The notes beneath the pieces were generated by a model, which worked only from the letters and a program-made list of their open reading frames with translations, ran no database searches and was not told the DNA's origin. Position numbers and translations under genes: made by a program. Positions 3,069 to 58,800 of a stretch of 64,000 bases of DNA are shown here, one piece after another. Origin of the DNA: Bugula neritina (Eukaryota > Animalia > Bryozoa); the NCBI GenBank assembly GCA_964035545.1, contig OZ037770.1, positions 3,938,662 through 4,002,661 of the forward strand, given 5' to 3'. Numbering within the stretch: the stretch's first letter is position 1; each line of letters begins with the position of its first letter.

Positions 3069-3347
3069 AGTTTGACTGGCTTGAGTTTACACATCTTTTA
3101 AATATGCTTTAGTAAAACTATAAGTTTTACTATAGCGAAGGTGTGGGCCATGGTACTCTGTTCTGTGCTGATGAGGGGACAAACCCCGAAACAGCTGCTG
3201 TCCACAGATTGAGATATTACGCTCTCATTTAATGCTCAGCAATGACATTAAATGATTGAGCACTCTCACCATGGTCACAAACTCAAGCTGCTTGCATTTT
3301 GCAATGCTCGCGACTCCTAGGTGACCCCTAGAGTCACTTGAGCACTC
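3063..3347 (+). mobile_element. Retrozyme-like / Penelope-associated hammerhead repeat, single unit, preceded by (TA)n
   Basis: Near-identical to 4971-5253, absent from the equivalent intron of copy B, contains a hammerhead and several hairpins. Confidence 0.75.
3163..3207 (+). ncRNA. Type I hammerhead ribozyme, copy 1 (intact core)
   Basis: CTGTG-CTGATGA-GGGG(ACAAA)CCCC-GAAA-CAG(CTG)CTG-TC^CACAG. Stem I CTGTG/CACAG, GUC cleavage triplet ending at 3202. Confidence 0.9.
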
Positions 3348-5069: not shown

Positions 5070-5114
5070 CTGTGCTGATGAGGGGACAAATCCCGAAACA
5101 GCTGCTGTCCACAG
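5070..5114 (+). ncRNA. Type I hammerhead ribozyme, copy 2
   Basis: Same fold, stem II GGGG/TCCC (one G-U pair). Cleavage after 5109. Confidence 0.88.
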
Positions 5115-5340: not shown

Positions 5341-5385
5341 CTGTGCTGATGAGGGGACAAATCCCGAAAAAGCTGCTGTCCACAG
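5341..5385 (+). ncRNA. Type I hammerhead ribozyme, copy 3 (C>A mismatch in stem III)
   Basis: Core CTGATGA/GAAA/GTC retained, but GAAA-AAG instead of GAAA-CAG. Cleavage site after 5380. Confidence 0.75.
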
Positions 5386-9951: not shown

Positions 9952-9964
9952 CATCTGTTGCCAT
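9952..9964 (-). CDS. Gene A first coding segment (MATD)
   Basis: ACCATGG and G|gtgagt, identical to copy B. Confidence 0.7.
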
Positions 9965-16800: not shown

Positions 16801-18690
16801 GCTCTGCTCACCAAGGGCCTGCCAAATTTGTTGACAAAGATAAGTTTAGAAATCCATGTGACACTGGTGTTTTATTAGGAATGGAATGCCCAAGATGGCA
16901 TCCTCCTTCAAGTAATTGAAGATGAAGGTCTTGTAGATCACCCGATCATAGACTGGTGTAGGTAGTGTAATGATGCCGTAGAACGGAATGCCTGACCAGC
17001 CCACCTATGTCATTATGTCCACCTACATATGGCTCAATGCTAGTCCTCTCTCAAGCGCCAAGAGTGTCAAAGAGATGCCGACTCAAGATTTTTATGGTGG
17101 ACCTAGTATCCAGTAGGAAGGCTGCAGCTTTACCTGCAATATTATAAAGTAGGAAGTAGCTGCCACCGTACGGCTGAGTGCTCCTGAAGCAGTCAGTGTC
17201 TGGCAGAGACACTTCTTGAGTCCTTACGGCGGGCCTACTTTTCGACTTCACGACATTGGAGGCTTTTCGAGGTTTAGAGCGTAGCTTGGAGTCCTTTTCC
17301 GCAACTTTGTCGGGTAACTCCCAGAACCGGTTGCTGAGTGGCTAGGCAGAAGGTTCCGGTAGACTTTGCGGTCTTCTAGATCTTTCTAGTGCGTGCCATC
17401 CTAAGTCAAGAGACTCAATCTCAGTATTTAGTGACCAGACAGGAAGTTTGTGCAGACCTATCAGCCCCCGATATCTTTGAGGTGTCTGCCATTTGGCGTC
17501 GACAGGCTCCATTGGCATCCTTCTAAATGAGGCTGACTCTGGACCCACAGTTGGCGGAAGTTACCGCAGGTATCCGGTGTTTAGAAGCACCTTCTTTCAC
17601 TGTTGGGCATTCTCACTGCATGTGTCCATTTGTCCCACACACCCAACAAGTAAGTGGGGTGGTTCCATGACCAGGGCAAATGCCGATCAGCTTGAGTCTG
17701 TAGGCCCTTCATCGTATTCATCATCATAAGGAATTTTGTAGGGCCGGCGACACCGTGGTATCAGCCACGACTTGAAGTGCTGGCGTGGTGGGTTGGACCG
17801 CCTCCTGTCCTGTTTCTTTAGTTTGGTTAGCAGTTAGTCTTTCCACTTGGTAATAGGCTTTTTCCATCTCTACCGCTACTTCAATAGAGTCGACCTTAGA
17901 TGCCAGTAAGTAGCGCTGCAGTCCTGCATAATTCAGTGTCCTTAAAATCAACTCATACCCCATGCTCTGGGCTATTTCTTTTCTGTTTGGCTGTGAGCTA
18001 TCAATGACAACTTCTTTATCTGGTAAACATAATCCTGAAAGAATATCCTACGGTCTTTCCTGAGACTCTGGAGTTTTTCTTCAGCGTCCCGAGCGTTCAT
18101 ACCAAATCAAGTCCCTAAGCCCGAAAGATGTACGTGACCCACGCCGGGATCTAGGCTATAATACTTGGGCTTGTTCGTTAAGCGGGTCCGGAGCTAGAGA
18201 GGTCACTATTTGGCAATTGCTGCAACATCCTCAAAATCATTAATGAAGTGCTTAAGACGCTATCTTCAAAAGAGAGAAGAGGGTATTTTTAAATGTGTAG
18301 AAATAATTTTATTTAGATATCAGTTTCCAAGAGTTGTTTTTGTCTGGCGAGCTCCGGCCATTGAATGGCTTTACACTGCGAGATCGTCTCTCTATATACT
18401 CTGAAAACATTTCTTCCAGAAGGCTCTATCGACCTTCGACCGAAAATTGATCATGTAGGAGTCTCCAATCGGATGCCCGACACTACGACATGACTAAAAT
18501 TGGTCCTGTCGGACGTGGCGCAGCTCCGACTCAATTGTCCAACACTCTGACATGCCTGATCTCAGACAAAGACCCTTTTTAGCATAAAAAATCAAAAAGA
18601 AAAACAAAGAATATGCCCAATCTTGGACAAAGGCCATTTCTTTTAGCATAAAAAATATAAGAGAAGAAAAAAAGAATATCATTGCGCTAG
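10810..18690 (-). mobile_element. Decayed Ty3/Gypsy LTR-retrotransposon complex (gag-like, protease, partial RT, integrase, duplicated 3' region), copy A
   Basis: Protease-like AFLLDTRST (17051-17251), integrase-like NLVGP...LVLTDHFSQWA...PEKIHTDQG (15627-15869), RT N-terminal remnants (15900-16400), gag-like GLQRYLLA...AYYQ (17724-17963). Many stops and frameshifts. Boundaries approximate. Confidence 0.85.
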
Positions 18691-33938: not shown

Positions 33939-34928
33939 CTAATTAGTGTCTACCGGTCGAACTACTCTGTGAGCGCAAGTAGGTCTTCTTAAAATACGTT
34001 TTACATGGTTAAAATAATTTGGATGAAAATAAATAAACATAAAAATGTTCTCAACACCATACATTGAAAGCAAAAGTTGAACTGCTGTTTCTACAGCAAT
34101 GATAGTTGATGTGGATAAAAATTTAACGCTATGACAAATCAGAATTATAATAACAAACAAGAGGTTTACTTGGTAAACTATGAAACACCAAATAATATAT
34201 TTACTGGCCGATATAATAAGTTTATCTTCAGACAAATTTCTTTGGGTCATTATTTTCAATTCTTTCCATGCTTTGACAAGCATTGCTGATATTATTTGCG
34301 AGAGAATGATATTTTGAATTCCAAATGAAATATACACTACATAGTATTCTAGAGTTTTAGGCACCATTTGAGTTGCCAGGGGTGTCCAGCAAAACTTTAT
34401 TTCTGGTATCATGATATGTGCAAGTGAGCTCGGCAATCCTAAGAAATATATCAGTACTGATACAGACTTTATATTTCTTACAAAGAAGTGTGTGCTATAC
34501 TCGTATGGCTTACGCACTCCAATATACTTCTCAAAGCTTGAAACGAAAAATGCCAAGAATCTGAGACAAGCCGCAAATCCTATTGCTGCTAGTGCAAGCT
34601 TTGACATCCAATAACTTGTTGGTCTAGGAAGCTGTAAAATAGCTTCTCTGGTCTTACAATTGTAAAATGCAATACTTAAAATGCTGTATAAAACATCAGA
34701 GACACCTAAGTTCATCAGAATCCAAAAGTAGTTGGCTTTAATCTCTTTTATCTGAGATAGTACAAGGAGATGCAGAATGTTGATTATTATGGATAGGCAG
34801 TTTACCCCATCCACAATCTTCCCAAATGAGTCGTAGCATTGACTAGTGTCATTGTAACAGGGTAATATTTCTGTATGCGACAAACTGTAGTTTTCCATAG
34901 TCATAAATATAACTGATTTGACACGCAT
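33939..34928 (-). CDS. Intronless orphan class-A-like 7TM GPCR, 329 aa
   Basis: Seven hydrophobic segments. TM1 N (IINILHL), TM2 NLGVSD, DRY-like SFEKYIGVRKP, TM7 ENIFMFIY, N-terminal N-glycosylation sequons. Confidence 0.85.
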   Translation of the reverse strand: MRVKSVIFMTMENYSLSHTEILPCYNDTSQCYDSFGKIVDGVNCLSIIINILHLLVLSQIKEIKANYFWILMNLGVSDVLYSILSIAFYNCKTREAILQLPRPTSYWMSKLALAAIGFAACLRFLAFFVSSFEKYIGVRKPYEYSTHFFVRNIKSVSVLIYFLGLPSSLAHIMIPEIKFCWTPLATQMVPKTLEYYVVYISFGIQNIILSQIISAMLVKAWKELKIMTQRNLSEDKLIISASKYIIWCFIVYQVNLLFVIIILICHSVKFLSTSTIIAVETAVQLLLSMYGVENIFMFIYFHPNYFNHVKRILRRPTCAHRVVRPVDTN

Positions 34929-38076: not shown

Positions 38077-38226
38077 TTAGGGGTTGTCCTTTCTGTTAAA
38101 CCCATCGAAGCCAGGAAAAAGGTAAAGTCTTTTACCATAAGGAAGAGTATTCCAGATTACAATCAAATTTCTGTTTCTCTCTGAATCTTCATCTGCATAG
38201 AGTTTCTTCACTAGTTTAGTCTGTAC
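38077..38226 (-). CDS. Caspase terminal exon (VQTKLVK...NTLPYGKRLYLFPGFDGFNRKDNP*)
   Basis: tacag|GTA acceptor, caspase C-terminal TL.K.LYLFPG motif, TAA at 38077-38079. Confidence 0.88.
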   Translation of the reverse strand, partial: VQTKLVKKLYADEDSERNRNLIVIWNTLPYGKRLYLFPGFDGFNRKDNP

Positions 38227-41200
38227 CTGTAGAGTAAGTAATGACTAGTAAGATTGTTTATCAATTCACTGTTATAGCTGAGCCAAGATGTAAATATTGT
38301 ATCCTACTTGTAACAAATATGAACAGCAAACACTTTGGGAATTGTCTACCACCGTCTTATCATATAGCATATAGCAGTACAGTGGCACTAGTTATTAGCA
38401 AACTACAAGAACATATATTGACAAGGAAAAGAAACTATAGAGCTAAAGAAATTGTAAGAACAAAAGCTACTAGTTAAACTAGAGAAAACTAGGAATGACG
38501 TTCTGTTACTAAAAATAGTAGATATCTTTTTTCAAAGGATAAAAGAGTTCCAACATAAAAATGGACAAAATGATATGATGAGAAATCATATTTTAATTTC
38601 TTAAATAAAATTGAAATATCAAAAAAGTTTGTGATTTTTAAACTCACATGCTGAAAGAGAGTGTAGAGATTACGGTGACAGGCATGTTTGTAGATTGAAG
38701 ATACTAGAGCTCTAATCATGGGAGATCCATACTCAGGATGTCTCTTTGATGCTAAAATAAAATTGAATGCAGTCAAAATACAGGTCAAGATAGACCAACT
38801 CTAACACGTTTTAGTTTTAGTGGAACATAAAATTTTTAATCTCAAGTTTCTGGAAAATACTATCCTCATTTTGATGCTGCAATAAAAGTATATGTAGCTC
38901 AAATTATGGTGTAGCCAGAGCAAGTTTAATTTTTTTTATTGCTGTTTAGTTTTTAGCATTAGCAAGCAATATGGCTAGTACACGGAAAAGCTTACATAAC
39001 ATGGTCAAATTAACTTTAGGAAACAAACTTTTAGATTGACAAAAACTAAAGCTGCGCACACTTATCACACTAATGAATAACTGTCTCCTGCTATACTTAC
39101 AGCAGACGTTACTCTTCAGAACAAGAAGATCATCTATATCCCGTACAGTTCTACACTCTTCTATTCTAGGTTCTGGTGGTGAGACTGGTCTACTGGGTCT
39201 TATTATACTGGGTGTTTCAGGATATACAATATCATCATTAGCTTCAAAATGTGTAGAAGAGACAGCTTCAGTTTCTTCTTCTTGAGCTGCTGCAAGACCT
39301 GATCTCTCTGGATTCGCATCAATGTCTGCTGCAAAACAAACATTACAAATATCTTAACTGTGTGAGCTAAACAATCTCGAGACACCCAGTTGCTCAAGCA
39401 TCAAAACTGTGAATCAAGTTAAACTGCATGTTGATTAGATGAATAGTCTCTGACAGAAAGTCTTCACTAGTTTAACCATTGAACTAAAAGTTCCAGTTTT
39501 TACCACAAAACAACTACCTCCACTGCTGGCTTCCAGGATGACAACTTTAGGTTTTCTCTTCATTCTATCGAAATACAAAGGAGTGAGTAAATCACACAGG
39601 TCAGTGAGGTTGACCTTCTTTAGGTCAGTTCCATAGATGCAGTTTTCTTCCCCACCATGAGTCATGACAACCAGTATATGACATCCCAAGTCTTTGTGTG
39701 TTTCTTTTTTCACCTCAGTCTTTACAGTAGACAGCATTTCCTACAAATTTGAAAATATATGTATATAACTAATGGTGTAAATTCACTTCATTTTAAGTTG
39801 GTAAATGACTGCTATTATAGATTTATGCAATGCAAACAAAAAGCTGTCTCATCTACCTATCAAAAGACCAAACAGTGAACCAAAATCAACAAGCCCTCGA
39901 AATTTTAATGCAGCTTTAGAAAAATTCTAAAAACAATAAGAAAAACATAATTTAGTGAATGTAAAAGACAAATTTTATTTTGTTAAAACATTTTACAGTC
40001 TTCAAAAATATTTGATAAAAGAACAAAAAGACATTATATATAAAAATCTACTTTCACCATAATAACATACCTCTGCTGTCAGGTCTGTCTGTGTCTCAAC
40101 ATCAAATTTGAGAGATTTCAACATGACAGACATGTTCTCAACATCAGCATCTGAACCTTCCCTGCATAAGTCTGGTCTTTCAACAAAGTTCTTGTTGTTT
40201 ATTATCAGAGCTTTTCCTCTCTCTCTAGTCATACTGAACACCTGGATACAAGTTTATTTAGAATATCACATACAGTAGTGACACACATGAGCCAAAGTCA
40301 AGAGTATAACAAAGATAGTGGCAAGCTTTTAAAATAAATAGTAATGGTGTGGTGGATTTGCATAATACAATAATGTAAGAATTATTTTCCCTCTATTTGG
40401 GCAATACTAATAGTAATGGTGTGGTGGATTTGCACAATACAATAATGTAAAAATTTGGGGAATACTAAAGGATACATTCATATGGGAAAGGTCACGGCAG
40501 ATCATCCAATGAGGAGGACTTGAAGGCGAGCTCTTGGCAAGTGAGAGTTAGGTTGTTGTGAGCGAGGGCTCGTATTGAATGGACGCATTGTATGGCTATT
40601 GTACTAATGTAGTTTAGAGTGATGTTTCGTATTGTGTTTAATTTGAATAATAAAAGCTAATATCCGGCTACTACCACGAGTGATTGATTAACTAGAAGTG
40701 AATACTAACTGCACACAATAAGACCCACGCACTATAATTGCAAAATTATAACAATAGGTAATTTAGATCTCAAGATGCCATATATGATGGTTCCAATTTC
40801 TAGGTCTGCCAAACAGCAGTAAAACACTCTCTTAATTGCAAAATCAATTTTTATTTTTACGTTAAGTTTTAAGTTTGTTTTTTTTAGGTAATGTGAACTA
40901 ATCAAACTCTTGTTTAAGACACCAGTTGTCATTTTTTCCAACAAAACATGTAAGTAGTCAATGTAAGTATGCTGGTTATTTTTACAAAAGTCATTCAAGA
41001 TATTATTGAAGTTACAAAATACGAGTTATTACACTGCATGATTCTACGTTATTGAAAATAGCTTATACTTAACGTTATGTTTTTACAAACCAAGTATGTA
41101 TTGGAAGGCTGTAGAATTAAATAAAGACAATTTATGGCTATAGTATAATTTGTTTGCATATAACACTTTACTGGAACTAAAATAGACCATAGTTTTTTTA

Positions 41201-44200
41201 TGTAAACAAAATTTTTAAAACCGAACCATCTGCAAAACATTCACTTAGCTTACAGATACAATTGATTGCAATAGAAAATTATAGTAAATTCAACTTCAAG
41301 CTTAAAGGTCACAAAAGAAATCATGCTATAAAGTGTTTGCCCCACTAGGATTACTCTATGGCCGTAGGAGTTACTGGGAAATCCTAATCCTTCATTCCAA
41401 GCAATTCTTTTGGCCTCGATTTACAGCTCCTTCAGTCTGCAGCTTCTCTTAGCCTTTGACATCTCTAGAAGTACTGCTACTACTACTCTTTACAAAAGGT
41501 CAAAAGAACCCAAAAGAATTGCCCCCTCCCTATTGGAATTCAAATGGCAGAAGTCCAGCTTTCAAGCATGCAAGGCAGGATAAACATTACACCACAAGGA
41601 CTAATGAGTAATCTCCACACAACAGATGCCTCCTAACCATGACAACCAATTGAACTCAAACTAATAAAAGCAGAGCAGAAACTATTATGGCTAAACCAAA
41701 AAAGATAGGTATAGTAAAATAATATACTTTGAAGATTTGCATTGAACAACTGAACATGACAATCTAGTAAAAGGAGTTTTTAGAAACTGAAATACTCTAC
41801 TTGGTAGAGAAATGAGAACTGCTATAACTTATGTTCAGCAGGTGATAAATTCACCTTGTCAGTGTTTGAGAAGAGTTGTTTTATCTTTGGGTTGGTTGTT
41901 GGCTTTAGTTCAAGTTGTATTAACTTCATGCCTTTTTCAGGTTGCAGATTGTCATCATCATCAGAGAGATCACTCAGACCATCATCATTTAATTCATCTA
42001 CAGTCACATGATTAAACAGATTGTTTTCAAAATTTGAAACCATAAACTACACATCTTGCTTATACAAGAGAAGAAGCAATTAAGTTCCGAGATCACAATT
42101 AGATATGATTTGTAGGAAAATATAGGGCAAACTTTGCAAAGCCTATAATTTTACCAATACTGCGGGTATAAAAAGTTAGTTATGTCTAAAAAGTTTACCA
42201 TTTGATTTGTTCTGCTCTCTTCGAATTTTGAGCTCAGAAAGAAACTTCTTCAATTGATTTGTTTCTGCTTCAGACAAAGTCTCACCTGAGCAAAACAGAT
42301 TGAATTAGTAACATTAAAACTAGATGAGAGCTATTACAAAATATGAGACATAATCAAAAGCTCATGTATCAAGTTTACACTTTATAAGTTAGCTTAGAAG
42401 TTCATTAAAGTAGCTGTGAAGTTTGCTAATGTCCATCTAGCTGTTATTAAAATTCATCAATGCCTGGAAAACTATTTAAAAACATTTGGGAAAAGCAATC
42501 AAAAGTGAATCATAGTTGTAAACATACATGGATGAATTAGAGCACTGGGTATCTCTTCATCGTTACACAATATTTTTGAAGATCCATGACACTTCTTGAC
42601 ATTTGGTGGCAGTTGGTTTTTTAGAGAACGGAAACACCATTTAGGATGCAAAAGCTTTTTAGGGCAAGAAACCCCCAGTAGCATGCAGTGAGCACAGATG
42701 CAGGCAGTGACTGGTCGACTAGCAGTCCAAGTTTCCATCACATGTTTGAGAATGTTGTTTGTGGCTGATATGACTTTCTCCCACATCCTGGAAATGTGAG
42801 GAGCATCGGATGACACGTGGAGTGAGACTCTTCTAGATTCATAGTCATGTGTCAGCTGTGTGTATGTTTCATCTTGATAGACAGTAGCTCCATTTCTCTT
42901 CACCTTCATTGTGGCAAACTCTTTAGAAAACAGTTCTAGCAAACCAACTGTCATTTGATGGTAGACATGCTGCGGTAAAGCCAGGCCCTTGAACTTTATC
43001 TCAGTGTGAAGGACCATATCCTTTGGTGAAGTGTATGACACACCGGTATGTTCCTTAGCAAACTGAGGGATGATGAAGTACGGTTCATGGACATCATTTT
43101 CCAGAGGGCCATACAACAAACGGAATGTTCTAAGCAAGCGAACAGCAGTTTCAACATCATGGAAGTTTTTGAATAATGTTTCCTTTGCAATCAAATATGT
43201 TAGAAGAGATTTCATCATCAAGCCCGTTGTTTTGAAGCAATTCACAGACTCTTCAAACTCTTCTGTTTCAATTCTCAACCCTTCTTCGGAAATGCATGAT
43301 TGGAAGTGATCAACTCTTTTCTGCCAGATCTCTGGGTCATGATGATACAAGACACATAGTAGTTTGGTAACTTCTGTGATCTTGTGAAATATGTATGGTT
43401 TGAGTGCTTCAATATTTTTATACCAGAGAACTTTGCCGCAGTCATGCATGTATGTGAGAATTGTATCTAGCTGATGTGGCTCAACCTCAAAGCCTTCTTT
43501 TGTCAATTCCAACAGAATCAACCAGAAAGAGCTAAATGCTCCGGTCAAAGACAAAACTTTCTCATTCACTTCTTCCCAGATCAGTGGCAAAAGCTTAACA
43601 AAGTGCTGACTACTTAGAAGAAGCGAGCTCTTTATCATTTCAAACTCAACATACTTTTCATCCTTTCCAATCTCATAAACATCTTCACTGGCAAAAACCT
43701 TTCCATTTGACGAATTGAAATGCTGTATTTTCGAGAAATTTCCATCTGAACTTTTCTCTTCATTGAGAACTTCTTTGCAAAGCTGTTCAGATATGCTAAG
43801 AAAGCTTTCTTTAAGCTGTTGAAACTGTTCACTCTGAAACTTATCCTTGTGTGTGAAGACAAGCTTAGGTGGGCCAAGAGACGGATGGGCTAGATAGAGG
43901 TGAGACATGAAGTCAAAGGCCAGCTTTCTGACAGCCTCTTTCTTTGTAAACTCATTTGAAATCTGATCATACTGCTCCATGTTGACAACAATTACCGGTA
44001 CACAATTCTGTCTCAGTGTTAAATGGTATGTGATATGGTAAACTTCTTGGCCTCCCATATCTATGAGACGAAGTGTTGTACCATCCACTTCTATCTCCTC
44101 CACCTTAAACACTTTTGTTGTCTCATCATACTCTGCATTCGAACTTCTGTCAGTCAGAACTCTCCTCCTGTCAGTGCTCTGTAATGTTTGAATTAGACTG

Positions 44201-47200
44201 GTTTTACCTGCCATGGTGTTCCCCAACACCACTATTGTAGCAAATGGCAGGTTCCTACCAGCACCCTTAACCAAATCTGTGTAGTATTGTCGCACAGCAT
44301 CTAATCCTTTAATACAGACTTCTAGTGGAGGAGATGTAAGAGCATTGCATTCATATGTTCGCAGTGTATGGAGACGTGTTAGCTGTAGTATCTCAAGGTT
44401 CAAGGATGTCATGGATTTGTTTTTGGATATATTCAGTGTGTGCAGATTACCCAATGCACACACTGAAGATGGTAGACTGGTGAATTTATTGGAAGATATG
44501 TGTAGTATCTGTAACTTTTTTAGATTCTGTATCCTAATAATATATTACATTCATATTATCAGCACATATTAGAGGTTAGTGAGATCTAATTATAGCTGTC
44601 ATAAATCTACAATGATAGTAAAGCAATTATACACAGAATGTAGACGTGTGAAGTGGCAATGGCTACAGTGACCTTATTATATAAAAACCTTTAAAGTAGT
44701 ATGGGATATAATTGTAATTCTAGAATTTTTATTTATTGATATTCTCACAATTATCAAGTGTTATTTTTGATATTCCAAATCATTTACAACACTACAACTA
44801 CAAATAATTGGTAAACGATATTAAAGAAGTATTTTACTGGCACAATTCATAAGGCTTCCATAAACAATGTTATTTTATATAACATGTAGTCAAGTATAAC
44901 TGCTTACACTGATATTTTATTAGATATAAATATGTACTATATATAATACAGTTAAAATCAAACTATATAAAGGCGAAGTTATTATGTATGAGTTTGCATG
45001 AAGTATTACAGAAAGTATGCCAGGGAAAAACACGATACTCAGCATTACACTTTAACAAACAATGCTAAGAAATACACATTAATAGTTGTTGAATAGAAAG
45101 TTCAATTTTTATCAACTTTGCTATATGATGAACAACAAGTTTAGGGTACCATTTTACTATCTTGCAGGGATATTACGTGTGCATTCTTTAAAAGATAGTT
45201 TTGTAATTTGAAAATGAAAGCGAATTATTGAACGTATTATAGATATGAACAACTTGTTATGTATACACCATTTCGAGCTTTACAGAAGAGAGGTATGAAC
45301 ACCATAATGTAGTTTAACTGTTTTGACTATTTTGCTAAAATTGTTTCCAATGGTAAGTCTATTGTGACACACAAACCTTTCGGGTAGATTAGATAAATTA
45401 CAGTTCACCATATCTAACTCCTCAAGTGATGTGAGTGATGACACAACTTCTGGTACTGTGTTGAGAGGATTCCTTTTTATGTCTAGTTTCTCTAACTGAG
45501 TCAGCTGACATAGACTGTAATATAAAGCTTATGATATATACATTTCATATTATAGAATTGAAAAAAACATTGCATTTCACATATTCTTCAATCATACAAT
45601 AACATACCATAATACTACTTGGTAAGCATATAAAGATATCAAATATAGAATGTTTCAAACAATACAAAAATATTGTGACACAAACCTCTCAAGTAGAGTA
45701 GATAATTTACATATCACCATATCCAACTCTTTAAGTGATGTGAGTGATGACACAACTTCTGGTACTGTGTTGAGAGGATTCCCTCCTATGTCTAGTTTCT
45801 CTAACTGAGTCAGCTGACACAGACTGTAATATAAAGTGTATGATATATATGTAGTCTGCATTACTATAATATTTTATACTATACTCACATTTTGTTTTCA
45901 ACCAGATAAAACTATATACAACTCAACTACCAAGCAACTTATTGCAGCATAGTACATGCAGAGCATGAGATGTTAACAGTTTATTATAATAGTGTAAAAG
46001 TATTCAATTATTATATATACCCAGTGTGTGAATACTAATCAACTATACAACTGCTTACTATTATTTATATTTTTATAGCAAAAGAATATATAATGGCATA
46101 TACCTTAAATTCTGTTATTTACACCGTATTACAGACCATATTTCATATGGAATTCAAAAAAATTGCATTTCACATATTTTTCAATTATATAATGACATGC
46201 CCTAATTATACTTGGTAAGAAAGTCTTTTATGATTTCAAGTATTAAATGTTTCAAACAATACAAAAACTGGGACAAACAAACCTCTCAGGTAGAGTAGAC
46301 AATTTACAGTTCCACATATTCAACTCTTTAAGTGATGTGAGTGATGACACAACTTCTGGTACTGTATTGAGAGCATTCCATCTTATGTCTAGTTTCTCTA
46401 ACTGAGTCAGCTGGCACAGACTGTAATATAAAGTGTATGATATATATGTAGTCTGCATTACTATAATATTTTATACTATATTCACATTTTGTTTTCAACC
46501 CAGTAAAATTATATACAACTTAACTACCAAGCAACTTATTGCAGCATAGTACATGCAAAGCATGAAGAAATATCAGTTCATTATAATAATGTGAAAGTAT
46601 TAAATTATTATACTCAGTGAATACTAATAAACTAAAAATAACTGCTGACTATTCACTAAATTTTATAGCGCAAGAATATATAATGGCCTATCTTAAACTT
46701 ATGTTATTTCCACCATATATACAAACTACTACATATATATAAATTCCTTTAAAAAAGTACATTTCATGTTGCAGAGCATGAGAAGTTAACAATTTATTAT
46801 AATAGTATACAAGTATTCAATTATTATATATACTCAGTGCATGAATACTAATCAACTCTACAACGGCTTACTATTATTTACATTTTATAGCACAAGAGTA
46901 TATAATGACATACCTTAGAACTGAGTTATTTTCACAATATTACAGACCATATTTCATATTGAATTCAAAGAAATTGCATTTCACATATTTTTCAATTATA
47001 TAATGACATGCGCTTATTATACTTGGTAAGAAATTATTTTACGATTTCAAGTAATAAATGTTTGAAACAATAAGAAACTGTGACAAACAAACCTTTCAGG
47101 TAGAGTAGATAATTTACAGCTCCTCATATTCAACTCTTTAAGTGATGTGAGTGATAACACAATTTCTGGTACTGTGTTGAGAGGATTCCAGCCTATGTCT

Positions 47201-48979
47201 AGTTTATCTAACTGAGTCAGCTGACGCAGACTGTAATATAAAGTGTGTAACATATGTAGTCTACTGTATCATATATTGACATATTCTGTACTCAGCTATA
47301 ATGTAAATTTTGTAGTAAACAATTTTGTTGAGACAGGGTAAGCAGCAAAAAAATCCTATTATGTCATGTTATAGGTGTAATGGATGCCCTGTGTAGAATT
47401 GAGTGATTAGATGTACAATATATGTATAAAGACATCCTGTAAGTTTAATAGATAAGGGCTACATCTACAATGTATTGCTAATATATAGTATGATTTATAA
47501 TAATGAATGGTTTAATTTGTTATAGCTAATCTGACACAAATTAGCATGTATTTAATACTTCGAAAATCTTTTATTTTTTAGTATATGGCTACATATAATA
47601 TGCTTATAATATATTATGTATTGCAGACAAAAACCTTCTGTATAATCCTACATGTATACATGTACTGCAATAATATTTCACTCCTGTATCCAACTACATA
47701 AAAATGTTTTAATTTATGATAGCGTGTGTAACACTACAGACAGTTTCCCACTGTCTAGTTTCTACAACTCGTTTAGCTGGGAGAGATACAATGTTATACA
47801 TATTACTATAGCTTTATATAGTGCATGATTACATCTTGAGTAAGAATATACTTCAGTATTGACTCAGACACATCGTGGGTGATACTTACTACAACTAAAC
47901 TCATTTACCATTTACACAGCTATCATAATAGACACTTACTTGTCTAGACTTGCTCTGTCATTCAGGTCAGAAACACGTAGACGCAGGGCTTTACCAGCAA
48001 TCTCTCCAATGTTGTTTGGAATTCTCCCTTCCAGTTTCAAATCTGTGATATCATAACTCTCAACTTCACGTTTCACTTCAGCAGTAGTATACGACTTGTT
48101 ATTAAGTCTCCATACATCTGACCAGCTTACAGGAGGCTGTCCAGAATGTCTGAACCAGATTCTCATATTCTCTGTAACATCATACAATGACAGTGTAATT
48201 ATTACACAGCGCTAGCAGGTGATGCCTGTCATTCTGAAACCTGTCACATATATCTATTATTTGCTGTGTGTCGGACACTATAGCTATATGTAGACATGTC
48301 TGGCTACTTTAGGTTTACGAAAGTAAAATCTGCAAATTTAAAATGATCTCTAATTCCCTGAAAACAACTGCTCTGTGTAAAATCTTTGAAATTATGCTGC
48401 TTCGGTTTCAATAAAGACCCTTTTAAATAATGTTGACATATATTCTACATTGTATAAATATATAAAGACATTTTAAAATCGATGAATTTAAAGCAGACAA
48501 AAACACGCTGAATTATCATTTCACATCCACGCATGCACAAAAAAGGTACGAATAGCAACATCAAGTTAAAACTTTCTATATCTGACACTGCATACTTTCT
48601 ACCCTATGAGTCACACAGCCAATGTTTACAGGATAATTCTAGAAACACATGGACTAGTATATAGTTAGAACACTTTCTGATAGTGAGATATATAGAACTG
48701 ATTATTTGAATGTTACTCATATTTTTACTATAGAAACAAGCAAACCATAGAAAAGTTTTTGAAAACTCTTGTCTCAATAGGTAAAACTTTTACTAGTCTT
48801 GCTAAAATGAGATTCATACCCATGCAGAGCTGGTTTTGTTCAAACCTATATTCAAATAAATGCTAAGTATTGTCTAAATACAAATAGTAACAACCAGTAG
48901 ATAACTTTGGTTGAAAGCAAAACTTGTAACTTGGCTTTTCAACAAAAATTTATTAAAACAACTCACCATCTGTTGCCAT
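38077..48979 (-). CDS. Gene B: complete spliced LRR-ROC-COR-(pseudo)caspase protein, ~1273 aa. Coding exons in transcript order: 48967-48979, 47940-48171, 47093-47230, 46283-46420, 45686-45823, 45377-45514, 42528-44533, 41855-41997, 40071-40241, 39518-39740, 39101-39328, 38648-38751, 38077-38226
   Basis: All introns are GT-AG with matching phases (1,2,2,2,2,2,1,0,0,1,1,0). Summed length is 3822 nt with no internal stop. Start is in Kozak context ACCATGG (MATD|ENM...). Recognisable LRR, ROC (GNTMAGKT, DMGGQ, THKD), COR and caspase motifs. Confidence 0.8.
38648..38751 (-). CDS. Caspase exon 4 (SKRHPEYGSPMIRALVSSIYKHACHRNLYTLFQH)
   Basis: S.R....GS..I..L p10 motif. ttttag|CA and CAT|gtgagt. Confidence 0.88.
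39101..39328 (-). CDS. Caspase exon 3: intersubunit linker and start of p10 (ADIDANPE...DIDDLLVLKSNVC)
   Basis: Open 228-nt phase-1/1 exon, NAGNAG acceptor (tttgCAGCAG), donor T|gtaagt. DDLLVLKS resembles p10 aDfLvayS. Confidence 0.8.
39518..39740 (-). CDS. Caspase exon 2 with catalytic His (VMTHG) and degenerate catalytic motif KPKVVILEASSG
   Basis: MTHG...IYGTD and KPK...EASSG align to caspase SHG/QACxG. tgtag|GAA and GGAG|gtagtt. 223 nt. Confidence 0.92.
40071..40241 (-). CDS. Caspase exon 1 (VFSMTRERGKALIINNKNF...REGSDADV...LTAE)
   Basis: Classic caspase p20 N-terminal motifs (RG.ALIINN.NF, R.GS..D). tccag|GTG and GAG|gtatgt. 171 nt. Confidence 0.92.
41855..41997 (-). CDS. Gene B acidic linker exon between COR and caspase (YELNDDGLSDLSDDDD...SNTDK)
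   Basis: Phase-1 acceptor ctgtag|AT matches the COR donor, and phase-0 donor AAG|gtgaat matches caspase exon 1. Conserved in copy A (1-34). Confidence 0.75.
42528..44533 (-). CDS. Gene B large exon: 3 LRRs + LRR cap (LTSPPLEVC) + ROC GTPase + COR domain
   Basis: ORF 42499-44463. P-loop GNTMAGKTS, IDMGGQEVYH (Roco WDFxGQ-like), VFTHKD (G4), COR with terminal CICAHC. Acceptor tattag|G at 44533, donor CCAT|gtatgt at 42528. 2006 nt. Confidence 0.93.
45377..45514 (-). CDS. Gene B LRR cassette exon B-L1 (LDIKRN / LDMVNC)
   Basis: 138 nt, tacag|T...AG|gtttgt, two 23-aa LRRs. Confidence 0.9.
45686..45823 (-). CDS. Gene B LRR cassette exon B-L2 (LDIGGN / LDMVIC)
   Basis: 138 nt, same splice signals, open frame. 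Confidence 0.9.
46283..46420 (-). CDS. Gene B LRR cassette exon B-L3 (LDIRWN / LNMWNC)
   Basis: 138 nt, same splice signals, open frame. Confidence 0.9.
47093..47230 (-). CDS. Gene B LRR cassette exon B-L4 (LDIGWN / LNMRSC)
   Basis: 138 nt, same splice signals, open frame. Confidence 0.9.
47940..48171 (-). CDS. Gene B N-terminal exon (ENMRIWFRHSGQPPV...RASLD)
   Basis: ttacag|AG acceptor, AA|gtaagt phase-2 donor compatible with the LRR exons. ORF conserved in copy A. Confidence 0.8.
48967..48979 (-). CDS. Gene B first coding segment (ATG GCA ACA GAT G)
   Basis: ACCATGG Kozak context, G|gtgagt donor, identical in copy A. The exon extends to an acceptor at ~49043. Confidence 0.7.
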
Positions 48980-49809: not shown

Positions 49810-52800
49810 TAATTTGGTGGATTTCGGAATATTAAGTAGAAAACATAACTCCTTGTATTATAGAGAAGAGAGTGTCTTGAAATGTGAAGAAATAACTTTA
49901 ATGCAAATAGCCATTTGTAAGAGTTGTATATATCCAGCAAGCTCCAGCTGTAGAATGACTCTAAACACTGCGAGCTTGCATACTTATAAACTCAGGAAAC
50001 AATCCTTCCAGAAAATTCTACCAATCTTCAAACAAAAACAGGTCATGTCAAGTGTGCCGGAGTCTCCGATAGGATAGGATGACGACACTTCGACATGACC
50101 AATATCGGTCACGTCGGACAAGTCGGAGCTTCGACATGCCTGGTCTCAGACAAAGACCGGTTTACAGCATACGAAATTAAAGTTGAGAAAAAAGAAAAAA
50201 ATATTGTTGCAGTTAGGCTAAATAATAGTAAAGTTAAAGACAACTCCAAAACTTTCCCGACTCAACCTCCATCGAAAAGTATCTTTTTTGATAACTAGCA
50301 AAAATGACACGCAGTGAAATGAAATGTAACAAGAAAATATAATAAAATAATTAAAGTATATGCATGTCAAAAAGCAAAGATTACCTAGGAAAGGCATCAA
50401 CTCTACCTCCTGATCTACAAGGTAACCATAAAGAGACTCTTCTTTCAGTTCTACCTTAGCATTCTCACAATCCACCAGCTCAGTTTCAATCCAACTGAGT
50501 AATGTAAGCCATGCTAGACTCTAGAGATAGAGCATCTAGCCTTGAAGAAATAACTGGCTGACTAGAGCTAGTGGTTTCTGGCAGAGCAACTTCTATGACG
50601 TGGCAATTATTATCTGGAAAAACATGACTGTTTGTTGTAGAGTCTTGAGTTGAAATGACCGAACCACGTGTCATCAGGTTTTTATCTGACAACTCTGCGG
50701 TCACGTGACCTGTCACCCAGTTCACTAAATATCGCAGGGACAACATGACGATTGGAATTTCTTTGAATGTCGACACTGTTCTTTGGCTACTTCATGGGAA
50801 TTTCCTCCTATTCCAGGGTTATTCCCAGTATAAGACTTGAAGCATATACCCATACTGGGTGTACAACTCTCCCATTTTGTTGGCCTCTGTCGAGGACTAC
50901 AAATACTGATGAAGTTTGTTGTTCTGCGAGTTGCACAGGTCTGGCCCTGCCCACCCCAAAAGTAGGAACGTCCTCTACCTCCAGAATCACCGGGGCCAGC
51001 CCCAGAGCTAGCTGGGCTGAGGTTTGGATTAGGGACGGCTCCAATCCACGGTCTGGTCTAGGGATGAGGATTTCCCAGTCTCAAGGTTTAGCTATCCTCC
51101 ATCTCGTGATGGGCCAATGGGCTGGCTCCTGTTGTGGAGGTGCTTGTCCTGCAGCGTCGGGGCTTTTCAAGATTTGCCCAAAGCAAGCCACTCAACAATT
51201 GTGGCTGGGCAAAACTTCCACCACACAATAAGGTCCAACGAACTTGGGTCAAGGTTTAGCAAACTGGCCGTGATGCCTACGATAACTGATCATCCAAACC
51301 CAGGCACCTACCTGAGAGACATGTCACTTATGGTAGGATGACGCCTCTTCATGGTGGCACATCTGCCACATTAGCTAAGACACATCGTCTCTTTGGGGGC
51401 TACATCTGCTGCCCGCGATGACCTGCTGCTTTTTGACTTTTTCCTCTGTGTTGTCGTGATCTAATCAGGTACTAGAATGCTGCTCATCGGAGACAGCACG
51501 ACCCATAAAGGCTGGGTAGCCACTGATCGGGTGGCAGTGGCAGGGGTGTTCTCCTCTTGGTCACCTCAATTTTCGACCGGTAAGCCAGAAACCCCAGAGC
51601 AAGAGCTAGCTGTTTGCGGAGCTCCCCATGTGGCAAGATCAGGTCTCGGAACGCAGGGAGTATGACCTATAGACCAAACATCTTGCCCGTGTGGCAATGG
51701 GCTATGTGCTGGTGAGGCAGTATATAATCCTGTTGGTACGAATACTCACCACACCAACAATAGATATTGGTGAAATGTTGAGGGGCATGCACTTTCAGCC
51801 CCCAGTGAGTTCAAAACCTCCGCTCACACTAGTGACTTTTGACATTGCCTACTCATCACACGTTCAGTCATTCCGGGGCCGTGTCTCACTGGTTGTCCAG
51901 TGCTGCTGCGAGGTGGACAGCCTGAGTAGCTTCAAGACCTGACTGTAATCCTCTTTGCCATCAGGTTGGTCAGTGCTAGCTCTCCCACCACCTAGGATTG
52001 TCTGTTCCTTTCCCGCACACTGTTGCAGGTCTACGGAGTGGAGGACATACTCATCTGCCATGACAGGGGGCTGTAATCATCTGGGGAAAACCTTTTGAGC
52101 TGTTATTAGCCATGGGAGGGTTCTGGAGAAGGTAAGATTAAATACGACTCCATCCTGCATCTTCACAATTCATATTTGACTCTAAGAGAGAAGGCAGAGA
52201 CCGATTAAGGCCAATCTCATTGTTGCAGAAATTTAGCATTTGTTTGTATGGTGCCCTCATACACACAGGTAGCTCAGTCATACCTAGAAAAGTTGTTAAT
52301 CTCACATCCTAATTTAGAAGGTAATCATGAAGAGGCTCCTCTTTGAGTTCTACCAGAGCATCCTCACAATCCACCAACTCGGTTTCAATTCAACTGATTG
52401 TTCACTGATTACTGTAAGTCGTGCTAGATTCCAAAGATAGAGGATCTAGCTCAAAAGAAATACTTGGCTGAATAGAGCTAGTGGTTTTTTGAGTAGATCT
52501 CATGCCGTGGCAATAGTCATTAAAAAAACAAGTCTGTTCAATGTGAAGTCTTGAGTTGAAATGCCCAAACCGTGTGTTATCAGGTGTTCATCTGACAGCC
52601 CTGCAGTCGCGTGGCTTGTCACCGAATTCACCAAATATTGTAGGCACGACTCTGATCATTGGAGTTTCTTTAAACTTTGACGCTGTTCTTTGGTCACTCC
52701 ATAGGAATTCCATCTCATTCAAGGATTATTTCTAGTATGGAACACAAAGCATTTACACGTATTGGGTGTACAACTCTCACCTGGTAACATCTCTAACATC

Positions 52801-55800
52801 TCCCTCTCATTCTAGGACTATTTACCTGTACTGGGTGTACAACTCCTCCCTGGTAGCATCTCCAGGTGCCCAACATGGTAGTCAGCCAGATACCCTGCAA
52901 TCTCCTATTTTATTGGCATCTGTCCAGGCCTACGGATAGTGATGAAGCTTGTTGTTGTGCGGATTCCACAGGTGGAGTGGTCCTGCCCTCGCCTACCCCA
53001 AGGGTAGAGACGTCCTCTATCCTAGAGCCTTTGGGGCAAGCCCCAGAGCTGACTAGGCCGGGGTTTAGATTAAGGTGCGATTTTAACCCGTAGTCTGGCC
53101 TAGAGAGCTAGGATCTAGATCTCCCATTTCTTGGGTTGAGCTATTCCGTCATCTTATAATAAGCCGACAATTTGACTCTAATGGTGGAAGTGCCTGTCCT
53201 GTAGCGTTGGGGCTGGCCCAGTATGGCTTCGGCCGCAGCTCACTTTGGACTGATATTTTTCCAAAGCGCTCCACTCAATAAATGTGGTTGGGCAAGACAA
53301 CCAGCACACAGTAAGGTCAAACGAACTTGAGCTGTAGCTTATCTGACTGTCCACAACACCTAGGATAACTGATCAATCAAACCTCGTTCCCTACTTGTTA
53401 TGAAGTCACCCACCTGTTACGGAGGAGAAGTCCTCCAAGCCTCCTATTGGCACCTTCTATTATTTCTCTTGCCAAACTTCATGGGCTGTACTTATCTTCT
53501 CTATCAGTTTCTCCATATACGCATGTAGTGGGTACTCGAGCACTGGAACATGGTATATTAGGTGCGCGGGAACCCTGGTCTCTCTGGCAAGCATCAAAAG
53601 GTTCAGGAGCTTCTGCGTGCTAAAGTGGGGCATGATGCGGTAGGTCCGCATGATTTGTGGCAGCACCGCATTCCATCCTTTTGACTCCTGCTTAAGTTTA
53701 GGCTCCTGAGGGCATCACGCGACATCCTGTTGTTGAGTTCCACAATTCTGTTCACTTGCAGATGATATGAAGTTTTTCAGCTCTAGTTCACCCCCTATAT
53801 CTGGCAGAGTTAACCCATTAGTTGGGACTGAAACAGGGTACCCTGGTCTGTATGAATCTTTTCTGGTAACCTGAAATAACAAAACACATGTAGGTCTAGA
53901 GCCTGCGCCATTGTGGGGGCTGACGTGTCTGGAATAGCTTGTGCGTCTGCCCACTGCCTGAAGTGGTCTGTGAGAACCAGTACCCAGGTGTTATCTCTGT
54001 CAGAAAACAGCATAGGACCAACTAAGTTTACCCCCAATTTTTGCCACGGTCGACAGGCATACAGCTGCGTTAACTAATGTAGCCAACTGAGGAACTGCTC
54101 CATGAGTCATTGGAAAGTTGCCTGGGCAGCCAATTATCTACATGACAGTACTCTCCAGTTTCACAGCCTTTCAATCATGGGCGACGCATGCTGCCTGTTG
54201 CTTAGGGTCAGAACAGAGGGGTACTTGCCAGCACTCACTCAGCAAATCAAAGTACTTAAGTATTTGGTTCCTGCAAGGTATCCAAGAACTCATCTATCCA
54301 ATAGAGGGGGTTAAAATCCTGGATGGTGACACTGTTGAGGCTGCGATAGTTTACGCAGAAGCTCTAACTGCCACCCTTCTTTTTGACTAAGGCTACTGGT
54401 GAGCTCTACGCAGTATGGGCTGACTTAATCAGGTCCCGGTCAAAGAGGTTTAGTACCTGTTGATTCAACTCCTTCTCCCTGCACTGTCGTTGAGTTGGCT
54501 GTTTTATGAGCACAATGTTGGCTGCCAAGGAAATCTTGTGGCAGATGATTTTGGTCAACCCTGTGTCATTGCCTCCACAGTTGAATATGCTACTGTACTC
54601 CAGGAGTAGTTCAGCCGGTTCTTGGCACTCCGAGCAATTCCTACAGCTTCAACAGGGTCAGTCATACAGGTAAGCAACACACTCCGGGGATTGCTCCCTG
54701 TCTGGTCCCTGGGCGCTGGTCACTTTCTCCGATGCCAGCCCCACATGGGCTTTTTGGAAAAAGTAGTACCTCCCCACAACGGCACTAGTCAGCAGTTTGA
54801 TTGGCTTTGTGAAAGGGTTGATGCATTGCCCGCGAAGCTCCCCGACATCAGTCTCGCCGATTCAGGTTGTTTGTCAATTGAATCTTCCTATACATCCCTT
54901 CCACCACTTCAAGCTTCGTAATCATCCTCCAGTTGACCGTTATGGTACCGTGCAGTCCTGTACTACCCGAGTTCTGCTCACCAAGGGCCTGCCAAATTTG
55001 TTGACAAAGAAATGTTTAGAAATCTATGTGACACTGGTGTTTTTTCAAGAATGGAATGCCCAAGATGGCATCCTCCTTTAAGTAATTGAAAATGAAGGTC
55101 TTGTAGATCACCCGATCATAGACTAGTGTAGGTAGTGTAATGATGCCGTAGAACGGAATGCCCGACCAGCCCACCTATGTCACTATGTCCACCTACATAT
55201 GGCTCAATGCTAGCTCTCTCTCAAATGCCAAGCGTGTCAAAGAGATGCCGACTCAACATTTTTATGGTGGACCTAGTATCCAGTAGTAAGGCTGCAGCTT
55301 TACCTGCAATCTTATGGAGTAGGAAGTAGCTGCCACCGTACGGCTGAGTACTTCTCTGAAGCAGTCAGTGTCTGGCAGAGACACTTCTTGAGTCCTTACG
55401 CCGGGCCTCCTCTTCGACTTCACGACATCGGAGGCTTTCCGAGGTTTAGAGCGTAGCTTGGAGTCCTTTTCGGCAACTTTGTCGGGTAACTCCGAGAACC
55501 GGTTGCTGAGTGGCTAGGCAGAAGGTTTCGGTAGACTTTGCGGTCTTTTAGATCTTTCTAGTGCGTGCCATCTTAAGTCAAGAGACTCAATCCCAATGTT
55601 GAGTGACCAGACAAGAAGTTTGTGCAGACCTCTCAGCCCCCGAGATCTTTGAGGTGTCTGCCATTTGGCGTCGACAGGCTCCATTGGCATCCTTCTAAAC
55701 GAGGCTGACTCTGGACCCACAGTTGGCGGAAGTTATCGCAGGTATCCGGTGTTTAGAAGCACCTTCTTTCACCGTTGGGCATTCTCACTGCATGTGTACA

Positions 55801-58800
55801 TTTGTACCACACTCCCAACAAGTGAGTGGTGGCGACCTGATGGGGTCATTCCATGACCAGGGCAAATGCCGATCAGCTTGAGTCTGTAGGCCCTTCATCG
55901 TATTCATCGACATGAGGATTTTGTAGGGCTGTGGTATCAGCCACGACTTGAAGTGCTGGCGTGGTGGGTTGGACTGCCTCCTGTCCTGTTTCTTTAGTTT
56001 GGTTAGCAGTTAGTCTTTCCACTTGATAATAGGCTTTTTCCATCTCTACCGCTACTTCAATAGAGTCGACGTTAGATGCCAGTAAGTAGCGCTTCAGTCC
56101 TGCATAATTAGGTGCCCTTAAAATCAACTCATACCCCATGCTCTGAGCTATTTCTTTTTTGTTTGGCTGTGAGCTATCAATGACAACTTTTTTATCTGGT
56201 AAATGAATCCTGAAAGGATATCCTACGGTCTCTCCTGAGACTCTGGAGTTTTTCTCCAGCGTCTCGAGCGTTCATACCAAATCAAGTCACAGTTAGTTTA
56301 AGGTCATACTTTTCATTTTCTGGCTCTTTGCCAGGTGCTTTATGTTCTATATGAACAATGTTCCACTGATAGCTCAAACAGGTTGAATGTCACAGGAACA
56401 AAAAAAATATGAAAAGATAAAGAAACTTATGTTCTCCAATATACTTTTTTATTTTTTTCAAAAGCCAACTCGTGTTTAAGTTATAGCTTCTTGAAAAACA
56501 TAGTTCCCCTTCCACATTCTTTTTCAATTTATACGCTCCTGACTTGTTATTGTGTCTCAATATGCCTTGTATTTGAGTGCTCGTTAGTCTCGCTTCACTA
56601 ACTTTGCCTATACTTCACAAGTGCCAGTGCTGCTGGCTCAAAAGCTAAATGTTATAAACTGTCAGCTAAAACCCAATCTTGTATTCCTAGGTTGGTTGGC
56701 CTAAATAAAACAATAGTCAAATCATGATTTCATGTTTTAAAAATTTACTCTATTCTAACCTGCTGCCTAGCTAGTTCTATTTTTGATAAATAATTACAAA
56801 ATTTGTGATACATTTTTTTGGCAACCATGTGATTTATAAAATGCAGTAAGGGTACTCATAATATTATATTATTATCATTATAATATATTATATAGTATTA
56901 TGTGTGTTTTTATTATACTGCATAATATCTATTTTATTATTGTTGTTGTGCAAACAAGTGCAATTAACCTAGTTTTCAAAATGTACCTCTAAATTATCAG
57001 AATATCAGTTTAGATATTTTCATGCTTTGTAAGGTAAACCTAAAAAAAGAGGCTGTATTCCCAAAGTAAAGGGTGTTGAACTATGAACTATATTAGATTA
57101 GCCACTCTGCTACCAAGTGCATCAGTATAATATTATATGAATAGCTCTGATGCTTTGTCTCCGGTGGCTGGCTGCGATATGATAACTTGGCCAACTTCCA
57201 AGAGTTTAAAATTGGCGCAATTATTCAAAAGGTTACATACTGCACAGAGCTAGCAGTGGTAGTAACCTTACTATTGACAGTACTTATTACAACTGCCAGC
57301 ATATAAGCTGCATTGTAGAATGCCGTTGGGGTAGGCTAGTAAAACCAAATTCTGCTCTCTAATATACCTTAGACACAATGCAGCAACATAATTGTTCGTT
57401 TCAAATTACATTGCCACCCTTACATGAGCTGTGGGCTTCATAAAGATTCATATGATTAGAGATTTATGCTATAGGCTAGCTATGATGAAAATAACACACC
57501 AATGTCAAAGTTAACTTCAAGTATGTTGTTTTCCAGAAACTCAGTAGCCTAATGTCCATTTATCTCTCGCATACAAATACTTATGTAATAGCATACAGTA
57601 TAAGTTTTATTTTAGAGCACATCTGCAAACTCTATAATAAGAGCTTGCTTTACCAGTCCATTTCAGACCTGTTTTTGTAGCTAGTAATACGCAAGCTACT
57701 TATTTTTAAACTTTTGGGTTATTTGTTCAAAACCATTAGCTTTGCTAGTAACCCGAAACTATTGCAACAGTTGACTGCTATCAACATGAATTGACAGCCT
57801 AATAATTATAACCCGTTTGCGCGCGAAATATTCATGTAATGATAGTTACTCATATAGTGCCCGTCTCATTACCGATGACTGCGTGGTCCAGAGGTTAGAG
57901 GCGTCAGCGACGAGTTGGTTGGTCATAGTTCAACCCTGTTGCAATTTTTTTTGTCAACTTATGCAAATCCTACGCATGTATAATAAATATGGCTATAATT
58001 GTAAAGTTTTTTTTTAACTTTTGTTCAACAGTGAGACAACATACATGCATAATTATTAGATACTGAACATTGGACTAAACCTTAAATTGATCTTATAGAA
58101 TACAATGTACTTAAAATAATCATATGTGAATTAGAGAAACTGAAAGTACACCTGCTGCGCTATAGACAGACCTTTACTGACAAGACTGCAAAGTGAAGTG
58201 ATTTAGCTGAAATTAACTCTGCCAAACAAACAAAGAATTATGTTGTGCTGAGGCATTTTCAATATATTATTGTAACATAGTGAGATGATTCAGCTAAGTG
58301 CTAATGTAAAACAGGGAACATTATATTGGCAGAAATCCAATAGATTGCCAATTTGTGCGAGAGGGTACTATATGTTATTGTGATAGCGCAGAGCGGCAAA
58401 CGTACTCGGAATGTTATAATTAGTCACAGGAGCGTAGCTAGAACCACCATATGAAGAATTTAGAAAATTGCAGTGAAACTTGCAAAATGGTGTATGTTTT
58501 GACCAAATTGTGAAGAGCATAAACAGAATTTCAAAAAACAAAAAAAGTATATTAGAGAAAACATATCAAGGAATGTCAAGTTTAATTTTTAGACTTTATA
58601 AAATGAATCCCCTGTGCTACAGCAGTGGAACATGGAGGGTGTAAAATTTTACTTATTATGCAACAACTTTCTCAGAAAATTTTTTATTGAAAAATTAAAA
58701 AAGCATAAGAAAGAGGAATGCAAGAGCTATCTTTTCATGTAAAATTTGTTAATGTGAGACAAAAACTGTTTGAGCTATCCCCTGGAAACCGTTTATATAT

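Follow-up and report, generated by a model that had tools for sequence, protein, structure and literature searches.

A 64,000-nucleotide (nt) stretch of the genome of the bryozoan Bugula neritina (GenBank assembly GCA_964035545.1, contig OZ037770.1, positions 3,938,662 to 4,002,661; the whole stretch is called the window here, and positions are counted from its first letter) contains on its minus strand a gene that joins leucine-rich repeats (LRRs), a ROC GTPase, a COR domain, and a caspase fold in one polypeptide chain. Sequence comparison shows that this gene belongs to an expanded cheilostome family predicted to encode single-chain LRR-ROC-COR-caspase proteins, an architecture that is apparently undescribed. 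Judged from its active-site motif, in which serine takes the place of the catalytic cysteine, the window copy is most likely a catalytically disabled pseudo-caspase and should not be annotated as an active caspase.

The gene model and the single-chain fusion

The gene model runs from 48979 to 38077 and comprises 14 coding exons (Table 1), with 1302 codons and a stop. The introns are GT-AG in 13 of 13 cases, the phases fit at all 13 joints, and the exons hold no internal stops. The ATG of exon 1 is the inferred start codon, and the first AATAAA past the stop in exon 14 lies at 37656. Sequence, profile, and structure searches were run exon by exon, each exon separately. An earlier note on this DNA had proposed that a ROC-COR exon is spliced by way of an acidic linker exon to a caspase, and the elements it described were found: the donor CCAT/gtatgt at 42528 (slashes mark splice boundaries) ending the ROC-COR exon 44533-42528, the linker exon 41997-41855 with its phase-0 donor, and a caspase exon from 40241 that reads TDK/VFSMTRERGKALIINN after that donor. 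Its statement that no prodomain or start exon precedes the caspase also held, with a stop three codons upstream of the exon 10 acceptor and no in-frame ATG. The junction 42528>41997 stood in both of its splice sites but not as a direct joint, because a conserved 87-nt exon, exon 8 (42285-42199), lies between them. The likely path on sequence grounds is 42528>42285 and then 42199>41997; the direct joint would skip exon 8 in frame. Exon 8 is 96% identical in a tandem copy of the gene, is also present in the paralogous loci L001, L005, L012, and L014, corresponds to the helix that follows 'PC' in the full-length proteins of Watersipora and Bugula, and shows a ratio of nonsynonymous to synonymous substitution rates (dN/dS) of 0.12 against L001; the dN/dS values given here are pairwise comparisons. 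Exon 2 matches the N-termini of the Watersipora and Bugula members P0193 (pairwise E 5e-9), P0195, and P0224, with no match to it in Pfam or Atlas.

The proposal that the LRR-ROC-COR and caspase parts form a single predicted chain is supported by splice conservation, by database proteins that are collinear in two genera of bryozoans, and, at the linker-caspase joint, by spliced RNA contigs. The donor at the COR end, CC(A/T)T/GTA, occurs in all 10 of the paralogous loci fetched and in both window copies, and the read-through tails past it are 2-50 residues long without conservation (10 loci). The linker donor AAG/GT and the boundaries of the linker-caspase intron are the same in 7/7 loci; in two of these the intron is just 80 and 93 nt, so there is little promoter space for a separate caspase. 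Single chains collinear with the window exons are recorded for Watersipora subatra (XP_067947674.1, XP_067948342.1, XP_067935178.1, XP_067941065.1, XP_067934863.1, and XP_067932893.1) and for B. neritina (KAF6038145.1, here P0224), these full-length database proteins being gene predictions and not transcript proof. Contigs from runs guessed to be RNA (three runs, at most two samples) cover the exons and fall to zero in several intron bins. They join the linker exon to caspase exon 10 (X1 and X3: 40222/41952 and 40243/41937; X2: 40220/41852) and join the caspase exons to each other; no single contig among them spans the whole stretch.

An arrangement of two separate genes, an MFHAS1-like LRR-ROC-COR gene that stops at 42499 and a caspase gene of its own, would fit the continuation of the open reading frame (ORF) for 9 codons beyond the COR donor to a stop. 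It would also fit the absence of a COR-to-linker joint among the RNA matches listed. This arrangement is nevertheless extremely unlikely and was rejected: the donor is kept in 10/10 loci while the tails are random, no AATAAA or ATTAAA lies between the stop of the COR exon and the linker exon (the first, at 41993, is inside exon 9), single-chain database proteins come from two genera, and the linker>caspase joints occur in RNA contigs.

By sequence and by modelled structure, the predicted protein is a ROCO in which COR directly follows ROC. Exon 7 matches Pfam Roc (E=5.7e-8, 33.5 bits against a cutoff of 27) with its motifs intact (G1 GNTMAGKT, the switch-I Thr, G3 DMGG, and G4 THKD), and GxxxxGKT, the switch-I Thr, DxGG, and THxD are near-invariant among 52 homologues. 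Pfam COR-A/B matches on this exon fall below cutoff. An alignment-based AlphaFold model of exon 7 had a mean confidence (predicted local distance difference test, pLDDT) of 91.5, and its best matches were LRRK1, the C. tepidum Roco, and LRRK2 (E to 8e-24 over 640-740 columns, the whole LRR-ROC-COR span), with the isolated COR crystal structure 3dpt matched at E 7e-11; a single-sequence AlphaFold model (pLDDT 34) was unusable. The dN/dS of ROC-COR is 0.18-0.25. No NACHT or NB-ARC ATPase match was found in the window gene with Pfam; a Ras-like ROC is present instead. Across the window's ten LRR cassettes, whose exons are non-independent, the proportions of nonsynonymous and synonymous differences (pN and pS) are 0.32 and 0.30 in the exposed concave-face columns and 0.07 and 0.10 elsewhere. 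LRR variation is thus concentrated on the concave face, where a pN/pS of about 1 is not proof of positive selection.

The caspase domain and its active site

The predicted caspase exons contain the large and small subunit blocks of a C14A fold in order. Pfam Peptidase_C14 is matched by exon 10 (E=2.6e-10, positions 1-49), exon 11 (E=4.3e-8, positions 50-128), and, weakly, exon 13 (positions 173-206), which also has collinear matches in seven full-length proteins (E 1e-5 to 1e-13). The Protein Data Bank (PDB) matches of exon 10 are caspase-3/6/7, while exon 14 alone has none. The last strand of the caspase, in exon 14, contains a Trp (V-I-W-N-T-L), presumably at the site where caspase-9 carries a bulky Phe, a residue unfavourable to constitutive dimers; the Trp would fit a need for an outside dimeriser. 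Pfam matches to a CARD, DED, or DD prodomain, tandem DEDs included, were absent from exons 2, 8, and 9.

The QACxG motif of caspases reads EASSG at 39533-39519, with the Ser codon AGC at 39527-39525 where paralogues have TGC or TGT. The Glu is a trait of the subfamily (paralogues read EACSG, EVCSG, and ETCSG), and the catalytic His is kept, MTHGG aligning to the SHG of CED-3. Changing the Cys to Ser is how caspases are ordinarily inactivated. In the PDB, exon 11 finds its best match in a CED-3 chain that reads QASRG at the equivalent place, the standard Cys-to-Ser inactive mutant. The Cys is kept in 9/9 Watersipora members checked, in the nine loci first fetched, and in most Bugula-type paralogues. 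An assembly error was excluded as the source of the change, as independent Joint Genome Institute (JGI) assemblies hold EASSG. The earlier note had read the protein as a sensor, switch, and effector in one chain; this fits the Cys-bearing paralogues but not the window copy as an active effector, its nucleophile being Ser. That the window copy could still be an active Roco-gated protease through a Ser-His dyad, as the retained His and pocket and the existence of such dyad proteases in other clans might suggest, is very unlikely given that Cys-to-Ser inactivates caspases, that the CED-3 chain shows such a change, and that Cys prevails among the Watersipora and Bugula-type relatives.

EASSG also occurs in L012 (P0199), L014 (P0200), P0207, P0208, P0209, and the fragments P0204 and P0210, giving at least five other EASSG sequences from independent assemblies, some of which may be alleles; P0211, from an EASSG cluster, was discarded as an unrelated bacterial methyltransferase. 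L014 has a complete exon series from ROC-COR to caspase with open frames. Other active-site variants were seen as well. P0205/P0212 read EAGCG, with Gly at the Cys position and THC for THG, and L001:4998-5210 reads EACSE with a 3-residue deletion. P0224 has the same layout of LRR, ROC/COR-like region, and caspase and keeps His and Cys (QSCSG), but lacks GxxxxGKT, DxGG, and THxD; from its motifs it would be a mirror case, a predicted live protease with a degenerate GTPase.

Selection on the Ser-bearing copies and possible roles

Pairwise comparisons show the caspase exons and GTPase of the Ser subgroup to be under apparent purifying selection. Caspase-exon dN/dS is 0.35 between the window copy and L012 (Fisher p 1e-3), 0.18 between the window copy and L014 (2e-10), and 0.25 between L012 and L014 (1.5e-6), at dS of 0.16-0.32 among the three copies. 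For exon 11 alone, two of the Ser pairs have a pN/pS of 0.23 and 0.29 (p<0.001), and the third, at 0.50, is not significant. The intersubunit linker in exon 12 has a dN/dS of 0.58-0.85.

Dimerisation turns initiator caspases on, and they can be tuned by dead paralogues, of which cFLIP-L is an example. ROC-COR modules dimerise chiefly through COR's C-terminal half and pass through a nucleotide-driven cycle between monomer and dimer (PMC6337361). It is an evenly balanced proposition that active members of the family are Roco-gated proteases and that the window copy is a sensor or regulator which pairs through COR with an active member, activating or damping it. In such a scheme the variable LRR cassettes would bind ligand, the nucleotide cycle of ROC-COR would toggle the chain between monomer and dimer, and COR pairing would set the dead caspase domain against that of a Cys-bearing paralogue. 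The dead domain might then tune its active partner, either by activation as a heterodimer or by damping, as cFLIP-L does on caspase-8, and the family would form a Roco-gated set of cell-death or immune receptors with active and regulatory members.

Several points weigh against this account. For bacterial Roco and in a model of LRRK2, monomers are favoured by GTP (PMC6337361), so the switch might work in either direction. The COR>exon 8>exon 9 joints are absent among the RNA contig matches listed, and the contigs, mostly 85-95% alike to the window, represent paralogues or other individuals. Monophyly of the Ser group is weakly supported by the tree, in which one side of a branch with support of 63/85 is made up of the six full EASSG rows. 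Furthermore, exons 7, 10, and 11 give conflicting trees. L001 is 89% identical to the window in exon 7 and 95% in exon 10, yet 63% in exon 11, where it bears Cys; together with the discordant trees, these mosaic identities point to exon-level recombination or conversion among paralogues. The chief caveat on selection is that gene conversion could spread Ser and lower pairwise dN/dS even if a dead enzyme were not selected for.

The Ser might be a by-product of birth and death in the family, having arisen once and been copied by tandem duplication and exon conversion into redundant, slowly decaying copies. The discordant exon trees, an apparent frameshift in the neighbouring tandem copy, RNA support for the window copy at paralogue level, and odd members of the family (EAGCG in P0205; a missing P-loop motif in P0224) would all suit this explanation. 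It is nonetheless unlikely, because the three Ser copies, at their level of synonymous divergence, keep every caspase exon open in frame and its splice sites canonical, and purifying selection is significant, including in exon 11 alone in two of the three pairs. A role as decoy or bait, in which the dead pocket traps caspase inhibitors or is cut by microbial proteases while ROC-COR reports to other partners, would follow an integrated-decoy logic. It agrees with the retention of His and both S1 arginines when the nucleophile alone is lost, with the fast evolution of the exposed linker, and with the variable LRR face; however, the caspase core is conserved and not diversifying (dN/dS 0.18-0.35), and this role is quite unlikely.

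Surrounding sequence, known systems, and significance

The window gene has a tandem paralogue at one end of the window (Table 1), the interval 1-23839 mirroring 41964-64000 at about 85-93%. The tandem copy has six LRR cassettes against four in the main copy. Its ROC-COR exon is 4 nt longer than those of the main copy and L001, and the apparent frameshift near 2480, in the last LRR, marks either a pseudogene allele or an assembly error; codons downstream of it have a dN/dS of 0.23.

Table 1. Coding exons of the window gene and position of its tandem paralogue
Feature	Start	End	Strand	Remarks
Exon 1, coding part (ATG, MATD)	48967	48979	-	phase-1 donor; matching exon in tandem copy near 9952-9964
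Exon 2	47940	48171	-	conserved ~77-aa N-terminal domain; R-x-W-x-R-H-x-G motif
Exon 3	47093	47230	-	138-nt phase 2-2 LRR cassette, two 23-aa LRRs
Exon 4, LRR cassette (138 nt)	46283	46420	-	Pfam LRR_4, E 4.4e-6
Exon 5, LRR cassette (138 nt)	45686	45823	-	
Exon 6, LRR cassette (138 nt)	45377	45514	-	
Exon 7	42528	44533	-	last LRRs, ROC GTPase, COR-A/COR-B, CxHC...C motif; phase-1 donor at 42528
Exon 8	42199	42285	-	87-nt symmetric phase 1-1 exon; predicted helix after COR
Exon 9, acidic linker	41855	41997	-	phase-0 donor
Exon 10	40071	40241	-	predicted caspase large subunit start; Arg of R-x-G-S (S1 pocket)
Exon 11	39518	39740	-	predicted caspase core; catalytic His kept (MTHGG); EASSG, catalytic Cys to Ser
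Exon 12	39101	39328	-	acidic, Pro-rich, weakly constrained intersubunit linker and small subunit start
Exon 13	38648	38751	-	predicted caspase small subunit; S-K-R-H-P, S1 Arg kept
Exon 14	38077	38226	-	small subunit end; stop TAA at 38079-38077
Tandem paralogue	1	9964	-	six exons with LRR cassettes; ROC-COR exon 2602-592; exon 8, 321-235; linker truncated at the window edge

Three minimal cores resembling hammerhead ribozymes (CTGATGAG...GAAA) lie on the plus strand at 3168-3191, 5075-5098, and 5346-5369, where 0.08 would be expected by chance. They adjoin (TA)n tracts inside the tandem copy's introns, two of the three being 271 nt apart; no Rfam match to them reached the gathering score, and by their sequence they may be retrozyme-like insertions. 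An intronless ORF of 329 hydrophobic aa at 33939-34928 on the minus strand resembles, by eye, a 7-transmembrane receptor and has no Pfam match. GC-richer blocks (about 44-52%) at 11500-18100 and 50400-56300 are duplicated with the tandem unit and hold internal direct repeats; lying upstream of both genes, they are probably a mobile element that has decayed.

MFHAS1 (MASL1) shares the LRR-ROC-COR order, and RefSeq names the Watersipora relatives 'MFHAS1 homolog'. MFHAS1 consists of LRR and ROC-COR alone, and the oligomer state of MASL1 is nucleotide-dependent (PMC6337361); the window family, in contrast, adds a linker and a complete caspase fold after COR and is expanded. LRRK1, LRRK2, and C. 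tepidum Roco are the top structural matches over LRR-ROC-COR, and LRRK likewise places an enzyme domain C-terminal to COR, but identity is 13-15% and the predicted effector of the window protein is a caspase fold, not a kinase or WD40 domain. The LRR-ROCOs of brown algae, which are candidate immune receptors with no other domain and for which no caspase is mentioned, resemble the window gene in their symmetric phase-2 LRR exons, copy-number change (four versus six in the window), and concave-face variation, but their exons are 72-nt units of one repeat rather than 138-nt units of two (PMC11378527). Trichoplax and Aplysia also have ROCOs coupled to CARD, death, or TIR domains (PMC4104024, PMC9334734); such adaptor domains could recruit an effector, whereas the window gene has its caspase in the chain.

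By analogy, the pair of cFLIP-L and caspase-8 may be compared with the window family, as it too sets a dead caspase paralogue beside active ones; unlike cFLIP-L, the window protein has no DEDs and keeps the His, and its platform would be ROC-COR instead of FADD/DED filaments. The logic of sensor, nucleotide switch, and caspase is shared with NLR inflammasomes and the Apaf-1/CED-4 apoptosome, from which the window protein differs in having a small-GTPase ROC-COR for the STAND ATPase and a caspase that is fused, not recruited. No description of a ROC-COR-caspase fusion was found in the full-text literature, where coverage of subscription papers is thin, and the novelty suggested by the earlier note agrees with this. 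The closest relatives are from JGI samples and from B. neritina and W. subatra proteins, and the known range is the two bryozoan genera Bugula and Watersipora, within the limited sensitivity of the searches. Scans of metagenome contigs with caspase exons yielded no related loci. A word-limited search aimed at long caspase proteins from outside the bryozoans, which does not show absence elsewhere, returned only Watersipora ROCO-caspases and unrelated architectures.

For LRRK2 it is an open question how the nucleotide cycle of ROC-COR governs the enzyme downstream of it. A natural fusion of ROC-COR to a caspase offers a direct readout, caspases being switched by dimerisation, and natural dead copies are ready-made partners for tests of heterodimer control. 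The family has been hidden in databases under 'MFHAS1 homolog', 'CASP8', and 'uncharacterized'. We suggest only tentatively, and would lean against assuming, that bryozoans run Roco-gated one-chain caspase receptors in place of or beside NLR platforms, with active Cys members and selectively kept dead Ser members pairing via COR. If this is true, sensing would be spread across many LRR variants and the death output set by dimer partners, an independently evolved cFLIP-like, paired-receptor logic on a G-protein dimer switch. Such a receptor, for innate immunity or cell death, would be of a design new among animals and belong to a colonial phylum.

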